A stretch of DNA of 64,000 nucleotides from Auanema rhodensis (GCA_964057225.1 OZ059900.1:9982001-10046000); one strand, 5' to 3'; shown: positions 11,954 to 53,564, numbered from the stretch's first letter. Numbers and translations are program-made. Notes: a model not told the origin generated them from the letters alone.

Positions 11954-13103
11954 TTAATGTAGATAGAAGCTCAACGATGCTGGATACTTCAAAAAACTTG
12001 GATCAACACTCAATTTCACCTTTAAGAAGTGAACTTTTTTAAATAGCCTCGTATATTTTCGATCCAGTTGGATGTTCCGCTCATGTTGCTCATTCATTTG
12101 GCTCAATAATATCTTCACCTTCTTCATATTTATTATCAATGCATCATCACTCTGCAATGTATTCAAACTTTGACCTTGTTCTTATCATTCCGTCTATCTT
12201 CCATCTTTTTAGTCTCTTCTTATACAAAAAAAGGTATTTATTTCTTCCATACTATCTCACTCATACCATGCATGTCGGTCAAACGTACTTGCTTTTGAAC
12301 TCGATCGACCAATTTCTTCAAGTATTGTAAACGATTGCTTTGGAACTGTTGAATCAATTCGTTTTTCATCTTCTTTTCCATCTCACGCCTATACGTTTCC
12401 AGTTCTATTCGATACAGCTGTGATGTTTCTGAAAATTTTGGTGAAATCCTAGCAAATCACATGTCCATAATTCTTATTTTCTTAACTTTCATATGATAAT
12501 CCATTTTTATTTTATTTTTTATTTTTTCATTTTATTTTATAAATGTAAAATAATATATTTATGGTTAACCTTTATAATCTGAAGACATTTGCATCAAGCG
12601 CTCACAAGTATCGATCAATAGTTTTCCCAAATCTTTTTGAATTTTGATCAATTCTATGTAGAATTCATCCAAATGACTAATGAGAATATCTTCATTTCTA
12701 TCCTTCATATTCACCATCTCAACCGCAATCAAATCACTAAATGATCTTTCATTGTTTATACCTATACATTTAACCTTTTTCATAAAAATATAATTAATTA
12801 TAGTTTCAAAAATCATACGTTAATTGCATAATATAGTCAAAAAATTATCTAAAAGTTGTCTTTGATAGACAAAAGATTGATTATATAATAACAAAATTGA
12901 ATCGAACATAGAACAAACCTATTCAATGGTTGTAATTTCTTTCCTTTTCCTGCATTTTCAATTTTTTGAATGAAATCATCACGAAAACAGTGAATAAAAG
13001 CTTCATGCTTTCTTGCTACCAATCTATAGGATTCAATGACAGCTTGTAATTGTGATTGAGCATTGTATAGCGAATCTATTTCATATGAAGTATTTGATGA
13101 CAT
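11954..13103 (-). pseudogene. Orphan helical/coiled-coil gene or pseudogene (possible family C copy)
   Basis: Consecutive minus-strand coding-like blocks at 12849-13103, 12565-12816, ~12428-12220 and 11954-12166. Splice phases could not be fully reconciled. Confidence 0.4.
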
Positions 13104-13957: not shown

Positions 13958-13963
<6 letters not shown>

Positions 13964-13988
<25 letters not shown>

Positions 13989-14001
13989 GGCTCTCTCTCT
14001 C
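13964..14001. repeat. (CT)n microsatellite upstream of the bZIP gene
   Basis: Directly visible. Confidence 0.9.
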
Positions 14002-14247
14002 TTTTGTTGTATATAATATGTGCGCGGCAAATGCTTGTATGTATCTATACATATGAAAAGCTGTGTGTAGCGCATATCGTTCTCTCTATCTATCGTTGCT
14101 TCTTTATCGGAAAAACGTTATACTCGGCTGACCATTCGTTTATACGCCACTTTTAGCAGACGCCTGTTCAACCCGTCCGCTTCTCTCATCATCCTCTCTG
14201 TGTCTGTTTCTTCGACCGCTCGTCAACCAATCTTATTGATTTTTGAA

Positions 14248-14634
14248 ATGGCTCACACATATCTGCATCGTGTAAGTTTATATTAATTATATATGTTTAA
14301 ATGAGAATTAAAGTTAAAAAAAGATTATTTTTGATCCAATTTAGAATTATTTCGATTCAATTACAGTTCAAAAAGTTCATTCTATGATAAACTATTTCCG
14401 TTTCCTTATCACATTTCGTTTAATCATTGATTGTTCTTTAGACACCTTCTCCACCTGCATATTCTAGCTTTAACAACATCACTACCTCTGTAGCCAATAC
14501 TTTCACTACTCCCTGTTGTCAAGTAAGTTTTTGAATCAGAATATAGTATTGATTATTTTCCAGCATACTATTTGTTTTTTTAAAGCATTGTTAATTATTT
14601 GAAATTATAGGAAAGCATGTGTTGGGTTTGTTGA
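14248..14634 (+). CDS. Spliced upstream overlapping ORF (42 aa) of the bZIP gene
   Basis: Exons 14248-14271, 14442-14522 and 14611-14634, both donors GTAAGT: MAHTYLHRTPSPPAYSSFNNITTSVANTFTTPCCQESMCWVC*. Confidence 0.65.
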
Positions 14635-15516
14635 GGCTGCAACCCCCGAAATTAGTAATTACAATACAAGCTTTGTTCCAACTCATCCATATTCGCTGCC
14701 TGAATTATCCATTCATTCCGATTTTACTTCATATAATCCTCAAGAACAACAACAATCGATCAATACTTCAATCAATCCATCAACATATATTTCATCAGAC
14801 AATTCATACACATCACCATCATGTATAAACTTTGATAATCAATTATCTTTATCGCCGAGCTATCGCTTACAAGAAAAGGTATTTTCATACAAATATACAA
14901 ATCATTATATCATCTTTATAGAATGAGATATTAGAAGAAATCGTTCGAGAATGCGAAGCCATTATCGATAGACAGTCCTCTTCATCACCCAGTTGCTTAT
15001 CACCAACATCATCCTTCTCATCCTTGGTTAGTTTATGCTGTTTTTATAAAGTATAGTAAACATGACATTCTCAATTTGCCAAATTTAAACACCTTCTATG
15101 ATGAAAAAGTGTGAAAAATAATTTTTTCTTCCAGGAATCATCACCAGAACCATCATCTGATGGTAAACCTGTTCATCGTGTTCAACGGAAAAAGGTATTA
15201 TATAAACTTTATATTACACATAGGCTGATTATTATATATTTTTGAATATTTTATAATTATTTTTACAGGAGCAGAATCGAGCTGCTGCTATTAGATATCG
15301 TGAGAAAAAGCGGAAAGAACGCGATGAGCAATTTTCCGTTATGAACGATTTACAAGTAATTAACAAGCAATTGCGTGGAAAGGTTTTATATAGTCTTCTC
15401 TAATCTATCTTATTTTATTTTTTTTCAAGGTTGATGATATCTCTCGCGAAGTGGCTGTTATGAGAAAGTTAATTATAGAATTAGGAATTAGTCCAGAAAC
15501 TGACCGGCTTACATAA
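14248..15516 (+). CDS. ATF4/ATF5-family bZIP transcription factor (atf-4/zip-3-like)
   Basis: Exons 14611-14878, 14922-15026, 15135-15194, 15269-15382 and 15430-15516 encode EILEEIVRECE and RKKEQNRAAAIRYREKKRKERDEQFSVMNDLQVINKQLRGKVDDISREVAVMRKLI, an ATF4-type basic region and zipper. Confidence 0.9.
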
Positions 15517-17112
15517 AACACATAGTTATGTCTAACTTATGATCTGAATTGTTGTTTTTACATATAATAATAACCAGCTAACTATTTAACTATATCTTCT
15601 ATTCATATATATTTTATAATTTTTGTATTGGAACACAAGATTTGTAAAGTAATCCTACATTTTTATGCTTGTTTTTTTTCTAAAAAGGGGGAAATAAACA
15701 AAGAAAATAACTTATTTATTGATCAAATATTCTTCAAACTATACAAAAAAAGTTTGAAAATGAATTATAATCTGGTAAAATCGCAACAATTTGCAAGAGA
15801 ATTACTTAACAGATGGTTAATGCTCTAAACTTCTTACAGAAATGCCGCCCTCATCAATGTCTCGAAAAAGAATTCGAAGACAATTTTAATATAGCTGACT
15901 ACTTGCTTAATGATGCCAGCGTAATTAAATGTTGTGCCAGCCTCTTCTTATACTCCCAACGCAACAATACACTCGTTTTCTTCATCATGATCTAAGTTAG
16001 ATCAATTTTTGGTCAACAGACGGACAATTTGTTTGTGAACTAATAATTTTCTTTGCATTTTTCATAAGTTTAGCTTTTCAAGTTACTTTGAATGTTTTAT
16101 GGATTTAGTTTTTCTTTTAATCTTAAAAATTCTCATTCAATAAAGAAATTGGATTTATACATTCAGTCTTGGCAAACTTTAACAGCTGAGACCGCTCCTA
16201 TTTAAACTTAACCAACTTCAAAATAGTTCAAACAACATTATATCACAAGAAGCCTGTAATTTTATTTTTTTTCTTCGTTCAACAATTTAATTATTTCGTT
16301 TTTTATTTTTTTTGATTGATAAGTATAGGAAGAATGAGATTTATGGAAGCTTGACCCTGTAATTCTTACTGCAATTTTCAAAACTTTAGTACGTCGTACT
16401 CAACATATCCTTTTTCGACGAAAAAAAGATGAAGCTTCTTGTAAATTTCTATTCAATTTTGATAGCGAAAAGAGTTTTTCTTCTTCTTTCAAACACAGAC
16501 ACAATGTTTGATGAATGTCTTTTGGCACTGCCATCATTGGGCCAGTAAGATCCGCCTTGTTATATTTGGTTGCTTCTTTATGAAAGAAAAGAAAATTCAG
16601 AGAGCAATCAAATCAGTGGACTTCTTCTTATTCTTCCTTTTCTAAAGCTAGTGGACATGCGTGAATATCTTAAATTAGGCAACAAGCCTTCAACAAGTTC
16701 TATGGGGCAGATGGTTTCGTCTCCAGAGATTGCACAAATTTCTCATCGTCTTGTACTAGCCACTAGCACTTTGCGTGTCAAAAATTGTGAAAAAGTTCAA
16801 GCTATTGGCTTAGCCAGATTTGACGCGGGTTTTTCTTACAATTTTTTTAACTTTTTAGCTCTCGTAATTACATGAGATCATGTACTATTCCAATTTTTCA
16901 AATGCAATAACTACTAGTAAGAGATCTTGCATTTTCATTGTGCATGATCTTGGGTCTTATGCTCAAGTTGACAACTATTTCAGTCAAACTTTTTCAATTT
17001 TGGCCATATTTAACAAATGTTTTCTTGAAAATTTTGTAGAGATTGAAATATACGCATATTCTATGATTTTACAAGTTTAGCTACTTCATTCTATATTCAT
17101 TAATGTTTACAG

Positions 17113-51863: not shown

Positions 51864-53564
51864 TTAATTATTGACATAATCAACGTCAGAGTTAGACCTT
51901 TGATTACAATTGAAGACTCTAGAGATGCATTCCAGGCGTGCTCGCTGATTTCGACTAGCAACACGTGCTTCTCTTCCTTTTGATACCATGCGAGAGATAA
52001 GCTTCGTTGGTGTGTATGCCTTCACATTGTGTTCTTCCAGAATCGATGTAGCAAAACCAGGGGGGCTGACTCTCTCTATCCAATCTAGTACATCTTGAAG
52101 CAGCGTTGGCTTACCACTGCATATTTTGCGTAGACCGAACAAACTCTGAGCCGATATGCTTTTGAGATACATTTCGCTAGCATCTTCAGCGGGAATCATG
52201 CTTTTTAGTTGTTCGTCGTAGTAACGGTAGCGAATTTCCTTACATGAGAATGCATCCTTTAGTCTTTTCTTCGCGTCTTCGTAGTCTCCAATATTCCCTT
52301 TCATCATGTCCGGTAATAATATGTCTCTAGCCGGTCCATGGACTTTATTCATCAATGCTGTTAGCTTCATGTCTGTGGTATACTTATCTTGCTTATCAAT
52401 AAGGTTTATGAATGGTGTCCAAAACATATCAAATTCATGTGGATTTCCAGTAAAATCAGGAATTAGATCAAGAACTTCATTCACCGGTAAATGGCTGTGA
52501 ACATCTTCAACGAGCGTGAATTTGATATCATCTTTCTCTAATACTGCCGAAAACAGAAGCGTATGCGACTTTTTCTTCTTCTTCTTTTGTCCGTCTTCTC
52601 CACTACTTCCTGGTGCATCTGATGTATCCTGCTCAGGCTCTTCATGAAATCTTTTATGCACATCTGGGGGATAGAAAACAACATTTTTTTCGAGAGCTCG
52701 AGCTTTAGGAGGAGACTTATCATGCTTGAAAGCAAATTCAACGCCATCAAATGGACTTTCCGTATTATTATTATCACATCTACTAAGTGCTATTCTCTTA
52801 TGGTATAAATGGCCAGTTAATCGTTCTGCTACAGCTCGTAGATATGCTGGATTGTCATTGTCAGTAGGATAGGTGCCGAATTCTTTAGCCATTTCATGTA
52901 GTCTTTCAATGCACTGCTTATTCAGATATCCAGGCAAAGGTCCATCAACAATAACATGAAGAGAACGATTTTCCTTAAATGCTTGATCAAGAAAAGCCAT
53001 CATTTCTTGAATTCCAAATTCAATACGGCCTATTTCATTGCCACGGTCAAGCAGATCATCCATAAACTTCTGGCATTCAGCAATCATAAATTCTCTTTTG
53101 CTAGTAATGGCAAGCTCCTCTTTTGGAAATACAACGTTGAGAAATTTCATTCCTGCTACGATTCCGGCTCTAAGTAACTCGAATGAATGATCTCGCATAT
53201 CTCTTAAAGCATCCAAATGAAAAATAATTGCATCCTTTGGTGTTGTGCCTGTTCGTTTGCAAACATTGAATTGTAAATCAGCAGGATCTTGTGGAATACT
53301 GTTTATGTCAGAAACATACTGCTTGAATGCTCTCTTGAATTCTGCCTTTTCTGCCTAAAATTTAAATTACATACAACAATTCTCATTAAATCAACCCACA
53401 TTTTTTCTCTTAGGATGTTCTTTTCTTCGAGCTAAAATTCTAATTGCTTGAGCTTCCGCACTTTCCTATAAAAATAATTATTAACTTCCTGAAAAGTTTC
53501 GAAGAGAACTCACTTCCACATGCGGCGGAAAACGAAAATTCACAGGCAGGCTCACAAATGGCAT
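51864..53564 (-). CDS. Intron-containing gene (~535 aa) with a BEL/Pao Gag DUF1759-like domain; putative domesticated gag
   Basis: Exons 53564-53514, 53465-53400 and 53354-51864, in frame with GT-AG introns. IPDFTGNPHEFDMFWTPFINLIDKQDKYTTDMKLTALMNKVHGPARDIL...DYEDAKKRLKDAF matches the DUF1759 pattern P.F.G...W..F...F...I......K...L...L.G.A......Y..A...L...[YF]. Confidence 0.75.

Follow-up and report, generated by a model that had tools for sequence, protein, structure and literature searches.

A bZIP gene of Auanema rhodensis without a start codon in its main frame: a candidate for entry by +1 frameshifting

A seven-exon bZIP gene and its transcript

This report concerns a gene for a bZIP transcription factor in a stretch of 64,000 nucleotides (nt) of DNA from the nematode Auanema rhodensis (GCA_964057225.1 OZ059900.1:9982001-10046000). 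The whole stretch is called the window here, and all positions are counted from its first letter. An earlier note on this DNA, made from the sequence alone, had proposed that the frame encoding the bZIP domain has no AUG of its own and is reached by an obligatory +1 frameshift from an overlapping, Cys-rich upstream open reading frame (ORF).

The gene is expressed, has seven exons and lies on the + strand between positions 14070 and 15715. One spliced RNA contig was assembled from each of 4 runs of one study, and none of the four shows a mismatch or a gap when aligned to the window. They share the joints 14271^14442, 14522^14611, 14878^14922, 15026^15135, 15194^15269 and 15382^15430; every intron has the form GT..AG, and since the contigs skip the introns they represent RNA. 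The word depth of the transcript is about 16 to 213 across the runs, contig depth being a poor measure of expression. Such contigs show the major form of an mRNA only, rare variants having been dropped.

The contigs begin at 14070, 14095, 14134 and 14138, and none of the four carries another 5' exon or a loose end. Upstream of them, at 13960-14019 on the + strand and 50-110 nt 5' of 14070, the sequence suggests a putative promoter. Here a long (CT)n tract (13960-14001) stands directly 5' of a putative TATA box, TATATAAT (14010-14019). The 5' leader runs from 14070 to 14247 and is followed by the coding part of exon 1 (14248-14271), intron 1 (14272-14441, 170 nt) and exon 2 (14442-14522, 81 nt). 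Intron 2 had been predicted in the earlier note at 14523-14610 (88 nt, GTAAGT..TATAG), and this is the intron of the assembled main transcript in 4/4 runs. The note had named, as grounds on which its proposal would fall, a main mRNA that uses a TTGAG acceptor at 14635 or an acceptor shifted by 1 nt, and a 1-nt error in the assembly. Neither was borne out: all contigs have the 14522^14611 joint, and none has an indel relative to the genome.

Exon 3 (14611-14878) encodes an S/T/N/P-rich region of the bZIP frame without detectable relatives. Exon 4 (14922-15026) begins with NEILEEIVRECEAIIDRQ..., an acidic helix followed by a Ser-rich stretch, and leads through exon 5 (15135-15194) to exon 6 (15269-15382), in which the basic region and the first zipper heptads are found. 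The remainder of the zipper and the TAA at 15514-15516 are in the coding part of exon 7 (15430-15516). The 3' untranslated region extends from 15517 to 15715, with an AATAAA at 15693-15698, and the contigs end at 15575-15715. The short GT..AG introns are set in a window that is AT-rich throughout (GC about 0.32). The spliced mRNA used below for the ORF map, the composition counts and the pattern scan was assembled computationally.

Two reading frames in one mRNA

The first AUG of the mRNA is found at 14248. It opens an ORF of 42 codons (ORF1) which ends at UGA 14632-14634 and whose product is MAHTYLHRTPSPPAYSSFNNITTSVANTFTTPCCQESMCWVC. Exon 1, as far as 14271, supplies the first 8 of its codons, exon 2 the next 27 (codons 9-35) and exon 3 the last 7. 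The AUG is in good context (GAAAUGG, with A at -3 and G at +4), and the 178 nt of leader seen in the contigs contain zero AUG, for which P is about 0.07 by chance.

Relative to ORF1, the bZIP frame is shifted by +1. Its upstream limit is a TAG at 14491-14493, and it stays open for 220 codons to the TAA at 15514, with its first in-frame AUG at 15341, in exon 6 and within the zipper. An open frame of this length has a chance P of about 1e-6 and is therefore real coding sequence, which is under selection now or was until very recently. The absence of AUG from its first 178 codons has a P of about 0.06; the AUG-free leader and the AUG-free start of the bZIP frame are thus both merely mildly unusual by chance. 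The two frames share an open stretch of 50 spliced nt, of which 29 (14494-14522) belong to exon 2 and 21 (14611-14631) to exon 3, and this dual-open stretch includes a CCC_U at 14511-14514. The spliced-mRNA map agrees with the earlier note wherever the two overlap, in all coordinates that the note gave, from the AUG and stop of ORF1 to the lack of a Met codon before the zipper and the position of CCC-T.

The nature of ORF1 itself can be judged from its composition. The residues S, T, P, N, Y and Q make up 0.60 of ORF1 in exons 1-2 and 0.64 of exon 3 in the bZIP frame, as opposed to 0.24 and 0.44 in the other two frames of exons 1-2. Because its S/T/P/N-rich make-up in exons 1-2 matches that of exon 3 in the bZIP frame, ORF1 looks less like a simple upstream ORF (uORF) than like the N-terminal part of the bZIP protein.

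This bears directly on one way in which the bZIP frame might be read. An overlapping, out-of-frame upstream ORF is a hallmark of ATF4, and ORF1 could in principle be an inhibitory uORF of the ATF4/GCN4 type, with the bZIP frame entered by leaky scanning or by reinitiation at a non-AUG codon; AUA 14497, AUU 14654 and a CUG near 14706 are the candidates. Control by uORFs is known for C. elegans atf-4 (PMC8857226). Just 5' of the 5'-most contig end there is also a possible 5-codon uORF, ATG AAA AGC TGT GTG TAG (14053-14070, ATG at 14053 to TAG at 14068), which, if transcribed, would make a short uORF1 like those of ATF4/GCN4. However, the bZIP frame provides no AUG before the zipper, and its near-cognate codons are few, in poor context and 3' of a strong AUG. 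With AUG 14248 in a strong context leaky scanning should be rare, and ribosomes that resumed scanning after ORF1 would first come upon five out-of-frame AUGs. With the make-up of ORF1 being that of the protein's own N-terminus, we regard entry by initiation as a long shot.

The bZIP domain and the search for relatives

Exon 6 matches the Pfam family bZIP_2 with an E-value of 7.1e-5 and 23.2 bits, over the cut-off of 22.3, while the match to bZIP_1 (E 0.0017) is under its cut-off. The N-x7-R basic motif, NRAAAIRYR, is intact in exon 6 (EQNRAAAIRYREKKRKE), and so are the zipper heptads read from the translation of exons 6-7, L-L-I-M-L with 7-residue spacing. With both features of bZIP membership present, the protein is, as judged from its sequence, a bZIP transcription factor. 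The earlier note had gone further and called it ATF4-like. This label is supported weakly: the PDB yields a single sequence match, to human ATF4 (1CI6_A, E 0.0085 over 36 residues), and the atlas features consist of generic bZIP and C/EBP clusters only, with all scores under 0.9.

Relatives of the gene are harder to find. A HMMER search with exon 3 against 1.84 billion representatives returned only the low-complexity repeat proteins P0001 and P0002, which were judged spurious. A degenerate DNA pattern for the basic region gave zero matches in metagenome contigs, and tblastn of the joined gene model against the window found no paralogue of the bZIP gene there.

A +1 frameshift as the route into the bZIP frame

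A precedent for entry into a bZIP frame by frameshifting does exist. Kniazeva and Ruvkun (PNAS 2025) proposed for C. elegans zip-2 a +1 frameshift from an overlapping upstream ORF (oORF) into the main ORF (mORF), the AUG of which is dispensable (PMC11831180), and the appeal that the earlier note had made to this gene is well founded. We propose that the gene in A. rhodensis is read by a +1 shift of the zip-2 type from ORF1 into the bZIP frame, and put the probability of this reading at about 0.4. A scanning ribosome meets AUG 14248 first and reads the 42-codon ORF1 to UGA 14632 in exon 3, and the default output would be a 42-residue peptide only. The full factor would be made only if a ribosome from AUG 14248 slipped +1 within the 18 dual-open codons, giving an ORF1-bZIP fusion of about 250 residues. 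Under such a scheme, more of the factor would be made when elongation or termination is slow.

Several lines of evidence point to a frameshift. In 4 runs the main transcript was assembled with the out-of-frame junction and without any indel, and AUG 14248 comes first, in good context, after an AUG-free leader. The composition of ORF1 fits the N-terminus of a bZIP factor, and downstream of it the 220-codon frame, the N-x7-R motif and five heptads are intact. Further support is drawn from the lack of other entrances, as the frame is restored by none of the alternative donors, the bZIP frame has no AUG before the zipper and its near-cognate codons stand in poor context. Finally, zip-2 provides a case of the same class, in the same phylum and with the same +1 direction, where the stop of the oORF is likewise 5' of later introns.

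Two sites within the dual-open stretch are candidates for the shift. The first is CCC_UGU (14511-14516, + strand), with CCC_U at the position named above. The CCC is the sole ORF1 codon in the dual-open stretch with perfect re-pairing in the P site after a +1 slip (CCC to CCU), and a slow Cys codon, UGU, would then occupy the A site; the next codon in the +1 frame is GUU. That CCC_UGU would be shift-prone is inferred from general knowledge. The second candidate is the ORF1 stop itself, UGU_UGA_G (14629-14635, + strand), where the shift would occur at a stop codon as in antizyme. From frame arithmetic, and as a matter of geometry only, a +1 shift at this site skips U14632 and reads GAG (14633-14635) and then GCU in the bZIP frame.

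The segment in which the second site lies is itself unusual. Its 25 nt (14611-14635, + strand) are GU-rich and read ESMCWVC and then stop in ORF1 and (K)KACVGFVE in the bZIP frame. From the CCC at 14511 to 14635, G accounts for 12 of 37 nt of spliced mRNA, compared with 15% of the whole mRNA. Within 14611-14635 there is a GCAUG followed by UGUGUUG / UUGUUG motifs; we take these GCAUG and UG-rich motifs to resemble the sites of Fox-1/ASD-1, SUP-12 and CELF/UNC-75. The earlier note had drawn attention to the Cys codons at this place. At least 4 Cys in 10 codons has a P of about 1e-4, a figure obtained post hoc. In the bZIP frame the same UGU patch reads GUU GUC ... UGU GUU GGG UUU GUU, that is V V ... 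C V G F V, and the run of UGU codons may equally be a by-product of out-of-frame GUU (Val) codons, or may be a GU-rich splicing element. A role as a sensor of cysteine or of elongation, which the note had suggested, is pure conjecture.

A further geometric relation between the two sites was noticed. The CCC is codon 32 of ORF1 and the stop is codon 43, so that they are 11 codons apart, and the footprints of disomes measure 58-61 nt (PMC8848926). If a ribosome paused at the UGA and the next one ran into it, the second would come to rest about 10 codons behind, with CCC in its P site and UGU in its A site. The chance of this coincidence in spacing is about 1 in 16. In yeast, however, the ribosome that shifts +1 is the leading, stalled one, an event suppressed by Mbf1/EDF1 (PMC8848926), and this would make the ORF1 stop itself the likelier site.

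What weighs against a frameshift

The evidence for a frameshift is indirect, and a number of observations weigh against it. Programmed +1 shifts are rare in animals, and a UGA with G after it is not known to be leaky or shifty. No stimulatory structure was found for 14611-14760: its minimum free energy is -19.1 kcal/mol as against a mean of -21.6 for shuffled sequences (z = +0.74), and 153 of the 200 shuffled sequences fold as well as the native one. At 0.06 stops per codon, the 50-nt length of the dual-open stretch is not above chance for the surroundings of any frameshift point. By itself the overlap is no sign of selection for dual coding, unlike the 121 codons of zip-2, and is equally expected from a plain recent frameshift mutation. 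No orthologue was found in word searches with the bZIP frame of exon 3, the stop-free stretch of exon 6 and the third-frame ORF of exon 3. The zip-2 model itself derives from genetics, with no detected transframe protein. Moreover, contigs hide rare isoforms, and an in-frame AG does exist at 14635. What the earlier note had said about the anatomy of the gene thus holds, while for the frameshifting itself structure, overlap length and the search for orthologues gave nothing in its favor.

Among the rival readings is that of a gene disabled only recently. Either a 1-nt indel inside 14494-14631 or a newly gained AG at 14609-14610 that captured splicing could have thrown the frames out of register. 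The mRNA would still be made and the downstream frame would not yet have decayed, little or no factor would be produced, no programmed mechanism would exist, and the condition would be specific to the species or the strain. The anatomy is indeed that which a plain frameshift leaves, with a matching N-terminus in ORF1, an AUG-less downstream frame and an overlap of chance length, and neither a signal nor a structure was found (fold z = +0.74). The lack of relatives of exon 3 among the 1.84 billion representatives suggests a young or fast-evolving gene, of a kind that is often lost, and the RNA and the genome may stem from one strain. On the other hand, the transcript was assembled in 4/4 runs, and there is no damage to the 220 codons, to four splice phases, to the basic motif or to the heptads. 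The +1 direction is that of zip-2 (PMC11831180), though this is a 1-in-2 coincidence. We hold recent loss to be quite unlikely, although it counts, with the frameshift and the minor splice form discussed below, among the three serious readings.

Can splicing join the two frames?

The in-frame AG deserves a closer look. It lies at 14634-14635 on the + strand (uugAG/G), 25 nt past the main acceptor, and by frame arithmetic its use would join the bZIP frame to codon 35 of ORF1 in frame. A minor productive splice form made in this way would supply the factor, the 14610 form being an unproductive default, and the choice between the two might be regulated through the GU-rich, GCAUG-containing 25 nt. 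The AG is in exactly the right phase. The resulting junction, ...TTPCCQ/AATPEISNYN..., is S/T/P-rich on both sides, and the 25 nt removed are odd in both frames and G-rich. In animals, moreover, alternative 3' splicing is generally known to be much more frequent than programmed +1 frameshifting. However, the 14522^14636 junction is present in 0/4 contigs, which counts against it as the main form only. GAG is the rarest class of acceptor, and G is not found at -3 in any of the six acceptors in use, which have T (three), C (two) or A (one) there. By chance alone, 30 nt would contain an in-phase AG in about 4 to 5 cases in 10 (a rough figure, from about 10 positions at 1/16 each). The unproductive form would, in addition, have to dominate at steady state despite an early stop 5' of four introns. 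Such a minor form is unlikely in our view, although it is a serious contender.

Other rearrangements of the mRNA fare less well. An unseen form could supply the start through an alternative first exon, or through an excision of the IRE1 type as in XBP1 and HAC1, which are known to be switched by frame-shifting cytoplasmic splicing; the contigs come from one study only. Yet no contig has another 5' exon or a loose end, and no alternative donor gives the frame, which makes an unseen form barely plausible. Of the specific routes considered, IRE1-type splicing was rejected after a pattern scan of the spliced mRNA found no pair of CNGCNGN loops around the overlap, only a one-off CUGCAAC at 14637. 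None of the alternative donors, and none of the alternative acceptors except 14635, yields the bZIP frame. Retention of intron 2 leads to an immediate stop (CAA GTA AGT TTT TGA), and skipping of exon 2 leaves the frames unchanged.

Comparison with known systems

If the frameshift is real, the gene works most like zip-2. Both encode nematode bZIP factors with a C-terminal bZIP domain, and in both the AUG that comes first, and is the stronger, starts an overlapping ORF upstream that shares an open stretch (50 nt here) with a bZIP frame in +1 and stops ahead of later introns. The oORF of zip-2 has 146 codons and an overlap of 121 codons, its stop is 5' of an intron, and the position of the mORF AUG is not conserved among Caenorhabditis (PMC11831180). 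ORF1, in contrast, has only 42 codons, and its 50-nt overlap is not the long conserved one of zip-2. Furthermore, the main frame of the A. rhodensis gene is without any AUG, and its observed leader shows none of the further uORFs of the zip-2 mRNA.

The likeness to ATF4, GCN4 and atf-4 consists in a possibly ATF4-like basic region and an out-of-frame overlap between an upstream ORF and the main frame. In C. elegans, atf-4 combines a normal start with two uORFs (PMC8857226). In the observed leader of the A. rhodensis gene there is no short 5' uORF, and ORF1 is like the N-terminus of a protein and not like a regulatory peptide. Since the main frame has no AUG at which to reinitiate, the first being at 15341, the gene is not a reinitiation switch of the ATF4/GCN4 type.

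Antizyme (OAZ) shifts +1 at the stop of its ORF1, UCC_UGA_U. It shares with the present gene a start-less ORF2 in the +1 frame, and the geometry of UGU_UGA_G is that of UCC_UGA_U. The P-site codon is different, however, no 3' pseudoknot or other structure was found at 14611-14760, polyamines play no part and the two proteins belong to unrelated families. Only geometry is common to the two.

Collision-induced +1 frameshifting of stalled ribosomes, described with yeast Mbf1 and human EDF1 (PMC8848926, PMC7486125), resembles the mechanism proposed here in being a signal-free +1 shift that results from slowed elongation, as has been invoked for zip-2. It is known, however, as an error kept in check by quality control and not as a means of gene expression. 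As for unproductive alternative 3' splicing and the XBP1/HAC1 switch, removal of 25 nt (3n+1) would likewise change the frame and yield a bZIP factor. The junction needed for alternative 3' splicing is, however, in 0/4 contigs and would use the GAG acceptor, and in XBP1 the bZIP domain is 5' of the switch, whereas here it is 3' and IRE1-type loops are absent.

The strongest form of the proposal is that an obligatory +1 frameshift within 18 codons (14490-14631) is the only route to this start-codon-less bZIP stress factor. The gene would then add an independent second example to the mechanism of zip-2, from a different genus and for another bZIP protein, and one with much narrower limits; this fuller claim is somewhat doubtful. 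The zip-2 model dates from 2025 and comes from the genetics of one gene, with the shift placed anywhere in 121 codons. Were dependence on a +1 shift true here, the gene would be a natural experiment in which the main-frame AUG is already missing, and with the shift confined to 18 codons around one exon junction it would present a narrow target. Frameshift-gated bZIP factors might then be a family trait of rhabditids rather than an oddity of zip-2. If the answer is instead a splice form of low abundance or a gene on its way to being lost, the case is an ordinary one, and a warning that an out-of-frame junction need not mean recoding.

Other features of the window

At gathering thresholds, Rfam has zero families in the window (1-64000). 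A 496-codon open frame at 51867-53354 (- strand) has no Pfam match at E 0.01. Weak matches, all on the + strand, were obtained for three further frames. The ORF at 904-1380 resembles Ty3_capsid (E 0.007, under the cut-off). The open frame at 10258-10551 matches a helix-turn-helix of a Sleeping Beauty-type transposase (E 2e-4, under the cut-off) and is probably a Tc1/mariner remnant. An exon-like frame at 36027-36299 matches the Ion_trans_2 pore (E 0.0076) and possibly belongs to a two-pore potassium channel gene. About 1.1 kb 5' of the bZIP gene, and divergent from it, lies a multi-exon gene at 11957-13103 (- strand) that starts with MSSNTSYEIDSLYNAQSQLQ....

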